A stretch of DNA of 64,000 nt from positions 17,536,752-17,600,751 of the forward strand of contig OZ316898.1 of assembly GCA_973895155.1 (NCBI GenBank). Direction: 5' to 3'. Both the position numbers and the translations under genes were made by a program. Positions 34,584-45,053 of this stretch are shown here, piece after piece (the first letter of the stretch is position 1; every line of letters starts with the position of its first letter). The notes under the pieces were generated by a model, which made no database searches, was not told the DNA's origin, and worked only from the letters and a program-made list of their open reading frames with translations. The stretch comes from Marsupella aquatica. Lineage: Eukaryota; Plantae; Marchantiophyta.

Positions 34584-37500
34584 CTATGGTCTGTTGTGCT
34601 TGAAGGATACAAATGCCATGAAGGCCAAAGTCGCGAATAGAGCCGCCATTCCAGACAATGCAGCAAAATCTAGAGGAACCCTGGAATGGTCGATATCCCG
34701 ATTAGTTTCCAAGACGGTCCAGGAGAAGGTGAATCCCAGATCCTTCAGCTGGTCACAACTGCAAGCAGGACAGGGTTGGCCTAGTTTCTGTCCACATGCC
34801 AGGCACTGGGGCCTGGAAACATCACAGTAAAATCCCACGGCAGTGAGGGTGTTCATGACGTACTGGAAAGGATCTGCCCAAAACGTCCATATCCATGGTT
34901 TTCGAAAAATTGGTAGAGTTATCACCACCCCAGACGCCGTAATCCAGAGAGATATGCAGATGGAAACGATGAACGAGGCCAGCATTGGAACAGGAGTGGC
35001 GATGGTGATCAGCATGGCAAAGTAGGCCATGGCAACAGTGAAGACAAATAGACTTAGCCAGTACCTTACGAAGGTACTCGCAGAATCTGTACCAATGCCT
35101 GCCAGTCCATTACCGATAGCCACAAAGATGAGTGTTGTCAGGAGAATGTAGGGGACTTCGGCTATGGCCCAGGATATAGGGTAGAGAATGGGGTGATACA
35201 TACTAGCTCTCCTTTCTCTGAAATAAGCCAACCTGTCGGTGCCAAGCTGAGGGACAACATTGTTGGCAGTGACAATGCCAATGAGTAAGACTTGGGCGTA
35301 AATGAACAGAGTTCTAGATGTAAGAGAGAGGGTAGTATCATTTGATGTTCCCACGTACACCAATCCCATCATCAAACCCAGGGCAATAGCACTTACGATG
35401 CGCCCGAATGTGTAGCCCACATTTCTCCACAAGAACTTTTGGGTCCTGAGGAAGACCATGATGGCCTGCATATAGAAAGAGGCTGGATATCTAGATGTTG
35501 AATCGAAGTACGCTCTCTTGCTGGGTTTTCTTAGCAGCGTGAGCTCCTCATTGTTCAGGCTTGCGAGTGAACTCTGTCCGTAGACCTCTGCGAAGTCATA
35601 CATGGGATCCCTGGTATTAATCCCACATCCAAGAATATCAAATACATGGGTGACAGGATTTTTCGTCATGTCATACTGTGGCACTCCGGGGATCGACCCA
35701 AAGTACTCCAGGAGGTGGCTGCAATTAGTTCCCACCGGCCCGAAGTAAACCTGCTGACCTCCAGGGGAGAGCAAGATTACTTTTTGGAAAGCACTCAACA
35801 TCCTTGAACTCGGGTGTTGGATTGTGGTGATGATTGTTCGTCCGGAGGCTGCTATGGTCTGCATAGCATGAATGATGTTCCTTGCACCCAGCCCATCAAG
35901 CCCTGAAGTCGGCTCATCCAAAAAGAGAATGCTAGGATTAGCAGCGATCTCCACAGCTATAGTAATCTTCTTGGCGATCTCAAATATTTTCCCTGTTGCG
36001 TCACGTAGAGATCCCACCAGCTGATCAGCTACGTCCGTAAGCTCCAGAAGGTCCAAGATGAGGTCAATGTGTAACAATCTGTCCTCCTTGTGAAGTTCCC
36101 TTGGAAGGCGAAGAGCAGCACTGAACATGAGCGACTCTCGGACGGTGAGGAAGGGTTGATGGGCATCCAGCCTTTCAACAAATCCTCGAGTTCTTGAGAA
36201 GGTAGCTGAGTCTAGCTTGTATCCATTAACTAGGATTTCCCCGATCAATCGCCCATTCTGCAGTCCTCGATTGGCAAGACATTTAAGGAGTGTCGTCGTT
36301 CCGGATTTATTGCCTCCCATGAGCGCCAGCATTTTCCCTGGTTTGGCATGTCCTGAGACCTTGCCAAGCCTTTGCCTCACCTGTTTGGTCTTTGGATCTC
36401 TGACCCAAAGGCTGATATAGAAGGAGATAGTGGCAGGCGTCACAGGGAGGTTCGAGGAGGTCCAGCTCAAAAAGTTCTCACATGATTCTAATTCCGGCAC
36501 AGCGCTGTCGAGAGACTCGTTGTCAAACTCCGTCATGGTCCGCAAACTTCTCACCTGAGCACCTCGGACAGCAGACTTCTCGAGCCTGTAAAGTTCCTCT
36601 GTAAGATCTACATCTCCCTGTACAATAAAGCCAGACCAAGAGATATTACTGCGTGTGTCATGCCTTGCATCGATCTCAGGAGATTTTGGCATCGCCAGCT
36701 GTACGTTTCTTTTGGTTTGGCTGGGCAACGACGGGGTCACAGAGCTATGCTCAATCTTCATGTACACTACATAGGCGACCAAGAGCATGAAGATGGTGCA
36801 TCCCCCGAGGAAAGCTATGGCGATCCAGTACCACCGTTGTCTAGCCATGAGCTCATAGTGGTCCTGAAAAGCAAAGCCCACCGTCCGTCCTGGATACTGT
36901 TGGCAGAAGAAAATTTCCAGTAGGTGTTGAGAACAGGGGTCCTTATAGAGACGTTCATACTGGTTGGCACAGAAAGCAACATTGGCCCAACGCAGAGGGT
37001 TAATTTGCGCGACCCATCTCCAGTATTTGGGCATGTTAGATGGGTAGATTATGAAGCCTGAGAAGAGGATGAAGAGAGCGACCAGCAATCCTGTACACAT
37101 TAAAGCGAACCGACATTTACAAAGGTTTTTAGTCACTAGTGGTCATCGTTTTCCCCATATTGAGCTCATCGAGGTTCAATCCATGGCGTTAAATTGAGGA
37201 CTGCAGAAAATATCATTGAAAACTAAGCAAAAACCGCTTCGATTGCAGTCATGGTTATCGGATTGTTCAGAAACAGAAGCTATTCCTCCGTCTCTAATTG
37301 AAAAACCAACCACATCCTAAATCGAAATTGATCTACTAAACTGTTTCATAAAATAAAGAAAATGATGGAAGGAAAGTCTAGTTTCATAATAGTGGTCAAA
37401 GCTCATGACAGATTCGCAGTTTCCAATTTAATGGCGTGAAAGGTAAGTTCGAATGATGCAAGTTTGTTACCTACTAAAGCATTTGCTTGTTCTAGAAGGG

Positions 37501-40500
37501 TTGCCAGTCCACTGAGGGCAAGGACCTGAGCCGTTCCATAGCAGCCGATTACAAACATGAGAAGCACGTACTCCAAGAACGCAACTCCTTTGTCTTTCGT
37601 CTCCAGGCCCACCAGGAAGTAAATCGTTGAAGAGTATAACAACGCCTGGCATCACGGATAACAACATCATACAAGAATCCCACAATATGAGACACTGTAG
37701 CAGTGCAGCCTGCAGCTGTTCAGAGGTCATTGCCAAACGGATGGAAACCGATGTTTAGGCCTCAAAGAAGATGGTTTAAGGGGGCTCCAGGCCCAGGTCA
37801 ATGTGACACAAGTTCACAAAAGGATGAGCTGACTAACAATGTAGGGGGATCTGATAGTCAACCTCAAGAAGTGCTTGCGGAATCCCAACGATACTCTGGC
37901 TGACGATGTAGGAAGACACTCGGAAGAACCGTTGCTGTCGCTGTTTGTAGAAAACAGCCCTCTGCGACATGAATAGCGGAAGCTGTACCAGACTCACTAG
38001 CATAAGGTTTCCTGTGGTGACGAACCCAACGCTTCTGGTCGCATTCAATTCTAGAAGGTCATACTTCCCTCCAACTTTGTAAAATAATGCTCCGCCAAAC
38101 AACCCCATGATAATCACCTGCAATATCACGATGAATGGCCGTAGGCTCAACCCATTATGTCCTGTCCATGATCATGAATGCAAAGTGTTTCATTGAGTAG
38201 ATACGGCTGACCTTCAGAGGACAGCGGTGTCTCAGTAGGCAGAAGGTAATATCAGTGGAATTAATGCCCACCATAGCCTCAGACTGAAACGAGGTCCTAG
38301 AGGACTTATGTCATGGACAAATTGCACAATGGCTTCTATCTTAGAACTTATGGTTCTCAGACTGAAACGAGTTCCTAGAGGACTTATGTCATGGACAATT
38401 TGCAAAATGACTTCTATCTTAGAACTTATAGTACTGTCATTTGCTTTCGTGTTATCAGTCGTTTATCACGAAAATATGTTCAGTTAACAGATTTTGCTTG
38501 TCCTCTGTGAAAATTGATGCAGAATACTTAAACATGAGCTTAACATTGTTCCTTTGGATGTGCTTTTGGGGTTATTGAGTCTTCCTTGCCATCTGTGACA
38601 CGGTAAACATATTTTGATGCACTCTCGTTCATAGTTGTCAGAACTGTTCAGGGTGTCAGGAGATGACAACTTTCTTTTGAGATCATGGGTGTGAATGTAA
38701 TTGAGAGTTCACAATTATTAAATCCTTACCTGAAGCATGCGTAGTTGCATCAACAACGCCACACGACGTAGTACTCTAATCTGGCGCTTGATCAATGTGG
38801 TTGTAGATTCCCTCCACGATTGGATGAACTTTCTGGAGAATTGCTCTGCCTGGGCTTCCTCTTGCTCCATGGTCTGCAAAGCAAAAAATGGATTTATGCA
38901 CTGTTAGACTCACCAGCATGAATTTTTTCTGATTGTATAGATTTCTTAGTGACTGAGAGAGGAGTCGACACTGCATTATGTTCATGTATATACTTCGACT
39001 CACGAGATTGTTCCCATGGGCCAGGAAGTACAAGATCTTACCTCAGGATCTCGAATCCGCTCAACTTGAAGGCGAACATGGCCTCGCGCACTGGCTAGCA
39101 ATTTGGCGATACTGGAGGCTCGGTGGCGTTGGTCAGCTTTGGACTTGCTTACGTTGAGATAAAACATGTCATCATTTGGCAGTGCGATTCCTGTCACGAG
39201 ATCGCCTATTTCCACCGTTCCAGAGCTCTCAATGCCGCGCAATCTGCCTGCGTGGGACGATCTGCCTCGGGTGGTCGAAAGTTTGCTCACTACCACCTCA
39301 ACATCTGTAACAGGATGATCAATATTTGTTAGATTCGATCTCGAACTTTCCAAATTTGATCGATGCTTCGGAACCATTGAGACTCCAGCAGAGAGAAGAG
39401 CCATGTACAGGGAAGTATCTTGAAGCTTTGGAAACGGGCAGGAGTGCTAGACATCGCCTGGTGACCATTTTAGGAATTGCTGGGTGGTAGCTTGGTAAGT
39501 TCTCCCTATCTGATCCCTACGATGCAGTGCTGATTGACAATCTTAGTTTAAATTAAGATTCTAATTAAGAATTGGGCCAGCTAGGAGCTAAAACTAAGAA
39601 ATGACAGGAGCCTGGAATTCCTAGCTGGTACAATTTTGATACGGAGAGGACTTTGGTCCCACAATTTTTCATCGAAGCTACAATACACTGATTAAATAAC
39701 TGTCCCAGATTTCTGGAAGCAGCCATTCAAGACCGTGTTTACTTCAGTTAATGTGAGCGATGCAGGTCACGCTGAAATGATGTTCACGATGTTGTCATCT
39801 TGAACATCTGTTCTTAATACCTGTAGCTGACATATTCGTGGATTGGAACTGAATTGCGTACATAAGACGTGTTCAATTTAAATCTTAGCTAGACCAGGCT
39901 TCAAGATCGAGCTTTCCATTCAGGAAGACTCTGACTACGGTCGACGGCATTACTTTCCGAGACTCTTGTGCATTATTGCGCGTACCTCCATATCCATCGT
40001 AATCTTGGGCACTTGTGCCGCGCGACATCTGCCGAATGCTTATGTCCGGTGGTCTGTTTGCAAGCACCCTCTTCATACCCTTCTTATGCTGCTTCTTCCT
40101 CACAGTGAGCCCCAGACTCGGTTCGCTCTCCACCCACAGAGCATGAATGACGTCCTCGCTGTGCACGATTCGCATCACCTCCTTGTGCACTTCCGAAAGT
40201 TTGTACGCCATCGCCAGATCGGCCAAGCTGGGACTCCCGTGCCCTGCGCTCAGGTATTGTAATCCCTCGCCTGCGGCTATTTCCATGAGGAAGTCTGCGG
40301 CATCCATATGTTTCGGCTTCTCGAATCTGTGCAGCCATACACACCGGGAACAAACGTCGATCACTCAATTGAAGAATTTTTGTCAATTCATATTTCCATC
40401 CTACGCCACAATCATTGCAACGCAAGCATAGCGCTCCACCTATGTACGCAAGCTGAACGCTACTTCAAGGTCGCATCTGGAGAATCATTGCCAACTGTTT

Positions 40501-43500
40501 CTGTAATTAGCTATCCCAGTGCATCAGCTTCTCGAGACCTTTTTCCTGGAAGAACGCTTCCACACAGTCTATTGCCATACGTTGTCATAATTAAAAGGTC
40601 CATAACTAGTTACGAGACCCATTGAGCAGCATTTGAACATATCTAGCAGGTCTCCAAAGAACTTCTACCTTGTACCTCTGTACGCGTGGTTGCATGGTTG
40701 GTTAAAGCTCCATGATCAGCGTAAGGGCCCAATCCCCTGCTCTAAAGTTAAGCTTTCGTATTTCAACGCTGTGCCGCTGTGTGTTCTGTAGGCTACTCTT
40801 TAGTTCGTTTCACAGGTTTGCTCTCTAATAAGGTGCATCCGTCTAGAGAGAAGCTCGAACAGGTTTAGGTTCTCTTGTGTTCTTCAATAGTTTGTTCGTC
40901 CTTCCTGAAGATTAATTATGCAGATTGAATCCATCAGGCGGTGTGCAATTTCTCTTTGGAACTTCTAGCTGAGTGTGATGATCTTCAGGAACAATAAATG
41001 ACCATATGAATGCAACTGATTTCGTGGACTGACTTACCCATGGCTGGCGAAGTAGCTCAAGGCGTCCTGGCGGGGGCCCTGATAGAGGATCTGGCCTTCT
41101 CCAAGCAGGATGACGCGGTCGAAGAGATCGAAGACCTCAGGGGAGAGCTGAACGAGAGACATGACGGCAGAGCATTGCTGAAAGCGGCCAATGGCTCGGA
41201 GAGTGGAGACAAGATCGTAGGTGGCCAGAGACTCCTGCCCAAAGCACGGCTGGTCATACAGCATCACGGAGTACGTTCCCATGGCGATCTCTGCCGTGGT
41301 CAGCCGGTTGCGCTCGTTCTCAGTGATCCCATCCTGCCCGGATCCGACCAGCTGATGCTCGATGCCTTTCAATCCCAGCACGTGCAATATGTACTCCAAG
41401 TAAGGGTCCTGACCTTCCACCAGTGCCATTGAGAAGAATCTTCTCATCTGCGGGGTGAAATTGCCCGGCTTCAGCCCTTGCGAGCAATCTCCCGCAAACT
41501 CCAGAGTCTCCCTCACCGTCAAGAATGGCAAGTGCCTGTACGTAGAAACGCATCGATCTTTCAAATCAGACACATTGCTTGGCTTCACTTGTCTAACTGA
41601 TTCTTCACTGTCTAGTCAAGTCCTTCGACTTTCATTGCTGAATGCTACTAACATAGGATTCAAAATTGTACACGTCTGAATAATTGAGACCAGGAATTCG
41701 TTTATATCAGATAGAGATAGATTATGTAGGATGGACAATTCATTCTTATTTTTGCAGAGCCTGCGATCCATACATCTCCGGTTGTGACTGCGTCACAATT
41801 CGTGTACTTGGAAGAGACAAATGCTTATTCAGTTCGATTGCCCATTCGATCAAGTTCGGCAATTGCCAGAGTTTTTTTCTTACATTTCCTTCCGCTGGAG
41901 TTCGAGTTTTGGTAATGGACAAAGGATGCATTGATCAGCAGATTGTCATAGAATCAATGGCATATAGGTGCAAATTTGTAGAGGAAGGATCGATCACACA
42001 CTGGTTGAGCTGTCCATTGACGTAGGCGATGAGCCTGGTAAGTAGTATTTCAGAGGCGACACGGTTGTTGAACAAGACCGTCCCTTCGAGACGTGTGACT
42101 TTGCTCGTCTCTGCTCTTCCTGCCAACACCTGCACATATGTGTAATCAATTCCATGCATCGTGAGTATTGTTTGAACCATCTTTGCAACTCACTGGACCT
42201 CCAGCTCGCCGAATTTCACAATCTCTGCAGAGTATCTGTAGAGATTTGGCTCTCTTAGTTAATCTCCTACGGGTCTCCATAATTATCTTCTGGCTGGCGG
42301 GATGGTTGGCTGGGCACCTAGATTCTGACCAACATAGAACACTCGGATCTATGACCTCCAGATGTGCAGATTGACGTCTCTACTGCAGGTCTGGAGGTTG
42401 TTTCAGCTGATGTGTAATCCAATGCAATTGGGCTTGATCAACAGACGGACGGAGGTCTGTAGAGGATTTCTGATCGACATGCGCACCGTTTCAAAGCGGT
42501 CTGTCGCAAAGATCAAGGACAATATATTCTGCATGGAAAAATAAAATTGGAAACAAAGAAATCTGCAGCTGCATGTACCTTGAGAAGAGAGCTCTTTCCA
42601 CTTCCTGCAATTTCAATTGCACCAGCCATGTTAATTTGACTTGAGAGATTGAAACCTAGATTTGGCCTAGCGCCAGGGCATAGAGCCACTTTGAATGCAT
42701 GCCAATGCCATTTGTAAATAATCAAAACTACATGTTTTGATTATTGTCAATTCTCACTAGAGGTTTGAGATTCGGCAACTCTCAACCGAGACAGATTTGG
42801 ACGCCCACTTATCCCTGGTATGCACTGTGTTACAACTACAAGTGATATCATTTATGCACTTCTCCATGGATATACATGTTTGCATTAGCTAATATTAAGC
42901 ACTTTTCTGTGGTTAAGTGAAGGCTCGCCATGTAGTCTCCTAATATTGCAGCTTTCGTTTCGTTGTAAATCCATGATTTTGTTTGTACATTGTGCTGTGA
43001 AGTCTCGCCATGTGGAATTTTCTTTGTAAAATTAATGCATCCATTTGAGATGGCATACATCCATTTGAAATTATTGGACTGTGGCTCGACGTGAATTTTA
43101 CAGACTTGGTCCGTACAATTGATCGTTGGAATGCAGGCACTCATTGCTCTCAGACAAACCTGGAGGGCCAAGAAGTAGCGTCATCGACCCAGGCATGATG
43201 TATCCCGAGACGTCCTTCAGGATATCCAGATGTCTAGGTGCCTGCTTCCTCCGGAAAGGGGTGGCGAGCACACCGAAGAAGCAGTTGAAGAGCTTGGCTC
43301 CAAATGTCGCAAATCCCGGTGGCTGAGGCTGCAGCTTAGTGGAGTAATTTATGTCGTAGAAGCGAACCACCTTCAAGCCGACGTTCCATGATGATGTACA
43401 CAAGAAAGATTAACAAAATTCGTCAATATTGGTCACCTTTCACACAAGTTTACTAACTACATGTACATGTACTTAACGAGAGCATCTCGATCTAAACGTA

Positions 43501-45053
43501 AGAATTGCTGATTCAAACAGATGCGTACTGCAGATACGCCATTGAACCTGTGAAGAATACAAATTGAGTTGATCGATCAATTCCAGGACCGTGATGCGGG
43601 GTCCTTCGAACACCACTTCTCTTATTGTGTCTTCGTGTGATTCACTTGTCTTTCATATTCAAGCCTTTCCTTGCCATTCACGATTGACGTCCTGCCCAGT
43701 CTTACAGCTTAAATATATGCTTAAGATTTAAAAACAAAACTCGAGTGCCCAGATTACGTTGTGGGTTCGATTGATGGACTGTCATTGAAGGGATATGATG
43801 AATGAAGAACTCGAGGCGTGAAAGTGGCAGTTCAAGTTGAGCAACTCGCAAACATTTCAATGTACTGTGGCAGCCTGTGGTTATGCTAAACCGGAAGGAG
43901 TGAATATGAAATAGGCTGCGAATCGTAGTCTTCGATCAGACGCCCGGATCAAGTACGTGTAGTAGACCTTCCAACTTTTAGCTAGCCGGCAACTTCTAGC
44001 CTCGGCAGTGTCTTCAAATAATTATAAGTTGAAACGTATCATTCTCTTGCAAAGTAACATTTCAGCTTCAGATCGGTCTGTTATTCATCGCGAGTGACAG
44101 AAATTAAGGTGAGCCTATACAATTCCATCAGAGTTGTTGACCTCGTTCTTGGCTGATGGATTACAAAACTCGAGATATATATAGCTGGATCAAGCGATGG
44201 ATCAAGAGACCGATGGATTGCGCTTTATAGATATATAAGAGATTGTTCAGGGTAAGGTAAATCCAACCTGCTGCGGAATTGGAGGAGTCAGCTTGGCCAC
44301 ATTGCGAAGGTAGTCGACGATCCCATCCTTAAGAATGTAGTCCATTCCCACGAGCTCGTCTACTTCGTTGCCATCTTCATCAAGAAAGCCTCGAACGCCG
44401 GTGGGTGCCTCCTTGAGACTGTCATCCCCATCCTCAGCATGTCCAGGTAGTTCAAACGCCCGTTGAGCCTCAGCAGCCAGGCCATGCTCCTTGAGCACCC
44501 TGTACATTCTAAGCGCCACTTCCTGGACATCCTCCGTTTTCGCCCGTGAAAGCTTCCGTTCGACGTACGGTGTGCCAGGAACATGTTGACCGTTGGCTAG
44601 AGTGAGCGGCGTCTCGGATCCTTCGACGGGAACAACAAATACGTTGCCAGTATAATCCGGAGTACTCGAAGGAGATGGGATGAGTCGATCGTATCTCGAA
44701 TGCCCTGAACCGAATGTGGACGCTCTACCTCGACCCTGCTGTTTATAGTTTGGCTCAAACTTTGTGGACTCCTCGGAAACTCTTGTAGCGTTCGAGGCTC
44801 GAGGACTAGAAGCTCCCGTAGACGCTATGGAGCCTCTTCTGAACTCCTCGGAAAATTGTGTAGCATTCGAGTCTCGAGGAGCAGTGGTGTCGTGGTAGTA
44901 GCTGGCATCGCTCGGGGCCTCGCTCGCGAAGCTAAATTCTGGGCCATTGTGCTGCTGCCCGGCAACGGTGTCGACCTCGCCTCGCCCCCGCCATGTTGGT
45001 AGAGACCCCATGCCCAACTCAGATGTCGAGAGGCTATTCTGCCTCGTGAACAT
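34584..45053 (-). CDS. Divergent full-size ABCG (PDR-type, NBD-TMD-NBD-TMD) transporter with PDZ-like insertion; exons 45053-44268, 43370-43160, 42604-42579, 42129-42002, 41535-41038, 40326-39986, 39304-39042, 38873-38730, 38117-37863, 37645-37471, 37090-34584; ~1777 aa
   Basis: PDR hallmarks include [72 protein letters not shown]...F, YWRWVAQINPL.W, TVRESLMFSAALRLP, VEIAANPSILFLDEPTSGLDG and R..YFRERRASMY. The eleven GT-AG exons sum to 5334 nt in frame. The exon 6/7 junction is the least certain. Confidence 0.88.
38278..38430. repeat. Intronic tandem duplication, ~78 bp x2
   Basis: CTCAGACTGAAACGAG.TCCTAGAGGACTTATGTCATGGACAA...CTTCTATCTTAGAACTTAT occurs twice. Confidence 0.9.

Follow-up and report, generated by a model that had tools for sequence, protein, structure and literature searches.

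Among plant transporters, full-size ABCG proteins belong to the best studied and have roles in defense compounds, hormones, and the cuticle; PDZ domains are known in plants mostly from proteases. One early-diverged group of full-size ABCGs in Viridiplantae, the V1-type, includes proteins of streptophyte algae (Chara, Klebsormidium), mosses, and Selaginella; Amborella was stated to be the sole angiosperm that has it (Cho et al. 2020, PMC8359288). The term "PDZ" occurs 0 times in that paper, and no PDZ-like insert is mentioned in it. Here, we analyze a full-size ABCG gene in a 64,000-nucleotide stretch of the Marsupella aquatica genome (contig OZ316898.1, positions 17,536,752 to 17,600,751; hereafter the window, with positions counted from its first letter). 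The gene occupies 34584..44675 on the minus strand, as do all features given below, and comprises about 11 exons that encode, in order, nucleotide-binding domain 1 (NBD1), an insert, transmembrane domain 1 (TMD1), NBD2, and TMD2, as traced by colinear tblastn high-scoring segment pairs (HSPs) and Pfam. We read it, with a probability of about 0.7, as an early-diverging land-plant full-size ABCG whose NBD1–TMD1 linker has been replaced by a divergent PDZ-like module of ~95–140 residues, probably a regulatory clamp.

The insert consists of 55 residues at the tail of exon 6, starting at VIHALWVE, and 87 residues of exon 7, giving the ~140 extra in-frame residues between NBD1 and TMD1 that a first-pass annotation of the window had proposed. 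Exon 6 (39986..40326) completes the NBD1 region and begins the PDZ-like domain, between an acceptor ...CACAG/A at 40326 and a donor G/GTACGC after 39986 (slashes within splice-site sequences mark the exon boundary). Intron 6 (39305..39985), which is in phase 1 and carries stop codons in all frames, divides the domain between predicted strands βB and βC. Exon 7 (39042..39304; acceptor ...TTACAG, donor GAG/GTAAGA) is predicted to contribute βC (VEVVVSKL), a GIESSG turn, βD (VEIGDLVTGI), βE, αB (RASSIAKLLASA), and βF (GHVRLQVER). Exon 8 (38730..38873; acceptor TTGCAG/A, donor CAG/GTAAGG after 38730) follows with an acidic linker and the amphipathic connecting helix that precedes TMD1 (FIQSW...LIKRQ), which aligns with an FVQTWW...RQ segment in all homologues. 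Read from the minus-strand splice sites, the frame is preserved across both junctions, 39986/39304 and 39042/38873, and tblastn with homologous proteins places both insert pieces in order within an otherwise complete ABCG gene.

Across one shared alignment span, members of the insert-bearing clade have 126–147 residues, canonical plant PDRs 33–34, and oomycete, fungal, and amoebozoan ABCGs 26–48; the earlier statement that canonical PDRs have only a short linker here thus holds. Exon 7 shares 41–55% identity with the corresponding segment of Pistacia, Linum, Tasmannia, Corchorus, and Selaginella proteins, and its 51% identity to Selaginella is comparable to that of the NBD2–TMD2 half (48%). 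Across 13 aligned relatives, the exon 6 motif W-V-E-S-E-P-x-Φ-G-L-(S/T), where Φ is hydrophobic, is nearly invariant, as are the G-D pair, the Y-L of βE, and the closing R-L-Q-x-E-R. Exon 6 is 75% identical to a related bryophyte protein (P0133) up to GL(T/S)V, and comparison with a related bryophyte contig (L002) gives a ratio of nonsynonymous to synonymous substitution rates (dN/dS) of ~0.38 at dS 0.36. The intron interrupts the domain at the same site in Selaginella (L001) and in L002, and angiosperm genomic open reading frame (ORF) fragments start at the position of intron 6. The insert is a coding module under purifying selection; its conservation across relatives marks it as real.

This module characterizes a whole land-plant ABCG clade and is not peculiar to the M. 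aquatica genome. All full-length relatives that we recovered within one land-plant clade, represented by Selaginella, Cryptomeria, Magnolia, Tasmannia, Psidium, Linum, and grasses, have it, and it is absent from the canonical PDRs and the oomycete, fungal, and amoebozoan ABCGs compared. Clade members have in common an X-hydrophobic-G-hydrophobic (X-Φ-G-Φ) loop, the GD motif, and a final strand reading LQVER; the domain profile matches every full-length clade member examined and nothing else. Among angiosperms, insert-bearing members are found in Magnolia, Tasmannia, Linum, Psidium, Pistacia, Camellia, Corchorus, Digitaria, and Panicum. The homologue search suggested in the first-pass annotation returns the same insertion in a related bryophyte, Selaginella, and seed plants, with oomycete proteins having a short linker. 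Two narrower searches—exon 6, with P0133 as its one match, and the Selaginella insert region, with four proteins—were limited by the word index and are not evidence on distribution. In one clade member, P0006 of Pistacia atlantica, residues 395–401 pass from W-V-E directly to βC, without the G-L-G-L strand and loop present in all other members; an error in the gene model of this record is the probable cause.

A quick maximum-likelihood tree of the NBD2–TMD2 halves joins the window protein with those of Selaginella, Cryptomeria, Taxus, Magnolia, Tasmannia, eudicots, and grasses in one group on a long stem (Shimodaira–Hasegawa-like approximate likelihood ratio test, SH-aLRT, 100), with Chara plus Mesotaenium as sister to the insert-bearing clade. 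Canonical PDRs lie across the root, together with oomycetes, and the Actinidia and Rhododendron PDRs are separated from the clade with full support. Pfam likewise places the protein outside the canonical PDRs: PDR_assoc scores 15.8 bits against a cut-off of 24.9, and ABC_trans_N is not found. From its taxa and tree position, the insert-bearing clade is probably the V1-type; its members in magnoliids, eudicots, and grasses contradict the statement on angiosperms in PMC8359288, and the matches listed contain no Arabidopsis member. The nearest algal relative examined, P0024 of Chara braunii, carries retropepsin-type Pfam domains, no PDZ-like insert, and no match to the domain profile; this model looks chimeric and so cannot tell whether streptophyte algae carry the insert.

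Profile, structural, and language-model comparisons, run on individual exons or on natural homologues, together make a PDZ-like fold of the insert quite probable, although each score taken singly is middling. Predicted βA (HALWVES), the X-Φ-G-Φ loop (P-S-L-G-L), and βB (LTV) lie at 40098..40151, where 13 members show little or no variation in the W, E-P, and G-L-S columns; the loop preceding βB reads S-L-G-L in the window, S-I-G-L in Selaginella, and G-L-G-L in seed plants. A profile built from exon 7 and six natural fragments finds PDZ domains as its three best PDB matches (PDLIM5, Enigma homologue), which are weak (E 0.2–0.5) and aligned on the GD segment. Exon 7 was also modeled with AlphaFold2 from a 7-row alignment, with a predicted local distance difference test (pLDDT) score of 70.7; the model spans βC–βF only and contains βC, βD, βE, αB, and βF. 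All of its top 50 Foldseek matches are PDZ domains, as anticipated in the first-pass annotation, with a best probability of 0.84 at E 0.09; solved PDZ domains are the sole fold returned for this model by Foldseek and VIA-align. For the contiguous domains of Selaginella and Psidium, every ESM Atlas neighbor is a PDZ cluster, at 0.75–0.79; scores below 0.9 are taken as leads only, and shuffled sequences reach at least 0.8 a third of the time.

Element order is consistent with the same fold. In a whole-protein AlphaFold2 model of P0128 (Corchorus, 1056 residues), the insert is predicted to hold two strands, a loop, two further strands, a short strand, a long helix, and a last strand, which is the canonical PDZ order (pLDDT 50–64 in the insert). 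Its first two strands, E505–510 and E517–522, fall on W-V-E-S and G-L-S-L with low confidence. Because the mean pLDDT of this model is 43, we use it for the order of secondary-structure elements alone. Co-folded as two chains, the exon 6 tail (residues 64–95) and the exon 7 peptide scored 0.18, a value that speaks on neither side of the question. The element-by-element assignment of the first-pass annotation—βA at WVES, loop and βB, basic loop, βC at VEVVV, βD at GD, αB, and βF at LQVER—agrees with the predicted strands and helix. The accompanying PDZ interpretation stands in part: the fold comparisons all give PDZ, but with no match to a Pfam PDZ model, the likeness is one of fold only. We therefore describe a divergent PDZ-like fold and do not claim family membership by sequence.

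The loop between βB and βC is variable. With the donor at 39986, it is long and basic (RKKQHKKGMKR...; 39986..40097), runs to ~39 residues, and is open in frame in both the window and L002 up to their shared donor; its length is ~7 residues in Selaginella and ~18 in angiosperms. Residues directly after βB are basic in all lineages and form polybasic runs in both bryophyte sequences (RKKQHKK in the window, KKKKRKKK in the relative). An alternative in-frame phase-1 donor, G/GTATGA, is readable at 40077..40079 (exon end at 40079, intron GT at 40078–40077); it would cut the loop from ~39 to ~8 residues, near the Selaginella length. Although the loop DNA is poorly conserved between the window and L002, the homologous donor GGAG/GTGCGC is kept in L002, where GGAG/GTRCGC forms an island of identity amid poorly aligned DNA. 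The sole good phase-1 donor of L002 sits at the site homologous to 39986, with the frame open up to the donor in both species, and the 40079 donor has no counterpart in L002. This retention favors the 39986/39304 junction, and on sequence grounds we would prefer the 39986 donor over the 40079 donor by roughly three to one; use of the latter could yield a short-loop isoform of the PDZ-like domain. We also considered removal of the exon 6 loop as intron through a phase-0 donor after GL(S/T) and rejected it: joined to the exon 7 acceptor, this donor gives an immediate stop in both species.

Tethered between the last NBD1 helices and the amphipathic connecting helix before the first transmembrane helix, the module would be held at the cytosolic face of the membrane. 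It would most likely serve as a built-in regulatory clamp, in which a short peptide would be bound by β-strand addition in the βB/αB groove; candidate peptides are a partner's C-terminus and an internal or intramolecular segment. Binding of this kind would couple partner binding or localization to movement of NBD1, and the basic βB–βC loop may contact acidic membrane lipids as well. A peptide clamp is favored because the X-Φ-G-Φ loop and βB, the strand-adding part of a PDZ domain, are the best-conserved surface feature. The binding of partner C-termini put forward in the first-pass annotation is purely an inference. A classical C-terminal ligand is made less likely by the variable αB residues, the lack of a basic residue before the loop, and the unconserved family C-termini. 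Binding of the transporter's own C-terminus was considered and set aside, since the last residues of the tails vary and are often not hydrophobic.

Several results weigh against a peptide-binding PDZ-like module and frame the alternatives. With E values up to 1 allowed, no Pfam PDZ family (PF00595, PF13180, PF17820) matches the exon pieces. For 13 full-length relatives, with the limit raised to 10, PDZ is absent for the first member and among the 25 most-matched of 54 families. A phmmer search of exon 7 against 1.84 billion representatives gives nine matches, which are family members or exon-like ORF fragments only, with no other PDZ protein. The structure matches rest on a partial-domain exon 7 model of moderate confidence from a 7-row alignment, the full-context P0128 model is poor (pLDDT 43 overall, 50–64 in the insert), and αA is helical in neither. 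Most groove-lining αB residues vary across the family, where one Leu alone is invariant, and the family C-termini (LKHNS plus 2–4 variable residues) are not conserved PDZ ligands. The strongest competitor to the clamp, possible though distinctly less favored, accepts the PDZ-like fold and dispenses with peptide binding: the module would be a structural or allosteric domain packing on NBD1/NBD2, or a lipid anchor acting through its basic loop. Precedents are available, since some PDZ domains bind phosphoinositides and the regulatory domains after the NBDs of ABCA transporters or MalK pack against NBDs. The poorly conserved groove residues of αB, the absence of a conserved self C-terminal ligand, and the basic residues after βB in all lineages, strongly so in the two bryophytes, fit this alternative, as does the invariance or near-invariance, in 13 members, of the core together with surface residues E540, K549, Q562, E611, and R612 (P0128 numbering). 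Yet the X-Φ-G-Φ loop, the hallmark of carboxylate or β-strand binding, is among the best-conserved parts of the insert, and a constant role in lipid binding is hard to square with the wide variation of the basic loop in charge and in length (~7 residues in Selaginella, ~39 in the window).

A different small β-rich fold, conserved and specific to the family, is unlikely but would explain the missing Pfam match; the apparent PDZ likeness would then come from short motifs and an AlphaFold model built on a shallow alignment. That this model covers βC–βF only, and that the ESM scores stay below 0.8, a level which shuffled sequences attain or exceed a third of the time, are compatible with such a fold. 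It is opposed by the agreement of the sequence profile, two structure aligners, and language-model features, which give only PDZ among their best matches, and by an element order and two signature motifs placed as in canonical PDZ domains. Far less probable still is a gene-model artefact, in which the extra residues would be a retained intron, an exonized repeat, or pseudogene debris. The DNA of the exon 6 loop is indeed conserved as poorly as intron, and the alternative donor at 40079 exists. But between bryophyte and angiosperms, RefSeq XP models among them, exon 7 and the βA–βB part of exon 6 are conserved as protein; both junctions agree in frame and phase, and the gene is otherwise complete down to its Walker A micro-exon, so that doubt is confined at most to the length of the loop. 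The divergent PDZ-like module, probably a regulatory clamp, remains our preferred reading.

The remainder of the gene encodes both transporter halves. HSPs with Pistacia, Linum, Psidium, Selaginella, Cryptomeria, and Magnolia proteins run colinearly from 44675 to 34587 across these halves; the 5' limit of the gene is approximate and marks where homology ends. The last exon (34584–37136, an 850-aa ORF) encodes NBD2 and TMD2 and matches ABC_tran and ABC2_membrane in Pfam. Together, these matches give the NBD–TMD–NBD–TMD order with ABC_tran and ABC-2 membrane domains of a full-size ABCG. A six-frame scan also locates a 26-nt micro-exon (42579..42604; acceptor TTGCAG/GA, donor AAG/GTACAT) encoding (G)SGKSSLLK; joined in phase 1 from ...GPP-G/GTTTGT at 43160, it completes the Walker A of NBD1 as GPPG-SGKS. 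Without this micro-exon, the ORF track reads GPPGLSES and NBD1 appears degenerate. In NBD2, the Walker A at ~36330–36360 (residues ~262–275 of the 34584–37136 ORF) reads G-G-N-K-S-G-T-T-T, with Thr replacing the Walker lysine, and the aligned Selaginella residues are the canonical G-S-M-G-S-G-K-S. NBD2 thus appears degenerate in M. aquatica and not clade-wide.

Our literature search found no paper linking PDZ to plant ABCG/PDR proteins. The suggestion in the first-pass annotation that the architecture is undescribed is upheld to the extent that no paper was found reporting the insert. Not being unique to this genome, the insert is most aptly regarded as an overlooked trait of a known, uncharacterized ABCG subfamily, which apparently escaped attention: The sole matching phylogenetic paper found the type in no angiosperm but Amborella. 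If the insert clade is the V1-type, it is missing from Arabidopsis according to PMC8359288; contrary to the same paper, the clade is widespread in seed plants.

A PDZ-like module at the NBD1–TMD1 joint offers a testable idea on how insert-bearing ABCGs are regulated, and it would add to the few plant PDZ-type domains outside proteases. If it binds peptides, it would provide a route to partners and perhaps to substrates; if it does not, it would represent a new kind of ABC regulatory domain. A bolder and rather doubtful possibility is that a single early event in land plants gave rise to an ABC transporter equipped with a functional PDZ module, which would read a partner's C-terminus or internal hairpin and gate the ATPase or the location in the membrane. 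We know of no transporter-embedded PDZ domain reported before; a working one would be the first, and would give a handle on an uncharacterized ABCG clade.

Set against known systems, the insert shares with canonical metazoan-type PDZ domains—CAL/GOPC (4k75), Dishevelled (6lca, 1l6o), MAGI-1 PDZ4 (2q9v), PICK1 (2pku), and PDLIM5 (2uzc)—a similar size and the order βA, X-Φ-G-Φ loop, βB, βC, turn/αA, βD with GD, βE, αB, and βF. Unlike these domains, it has an acidic E-S-E-P in place of a basic residue before the binding loop, an αA that is not predicted as a helix, and a βB–βC loop that in bryophytes is very long and basic; it is recognized by no Pfam PDZ model and is embedded in a transporter chain instead of a scaffold protein. 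As a transporter, the window protein resembles the V1-type, exemplified by Selaginella SELMODRAFT_406260 (EFJ33605.1), in being a full-size ABCG outside the canonical PDR radiation that is present in bryophytes and Selaginella; over its last exon, it shares 48% identity with the Selaginella protein. With canonical plant PDR/ABCG29–43 and fungal Pdr5/CDR proteins, it shares the reverse NBD–TMD–NBD–TMD topology and the ABC_tran and ABC2_membrane domains. It differs from these proteins in its identity of only ~30% and in the NBD1–TMD1 span, which is 126–147 residues in the clade versus a 33–48-residue linker.

Cytosolic modules beside an NBD that tune the ATPase cycle or trafficking are known from other ABC proteins, namely the regulatory domains of ABCA1/ABCA4, the R region of CFTR, and the C-terminal regulatory domains of MalK/MetN. 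These modules have other folds (ACT-like, disordered, or TOBE-like) than the one predicted here. In a well-known kind of partnership, PDZ scaffolds such as NHERF1 or CAL bind the CFTR tail in trans, so that the PDZ domain resides on a separate protein and the transporter gives the ligand. In the M. aquatica protein and its clade, the usual arrangement, in which the transporter offers a tail and the scaffold a PDZ domain, would be reversed, with the PDZ-like module built into the transporter chain itself.

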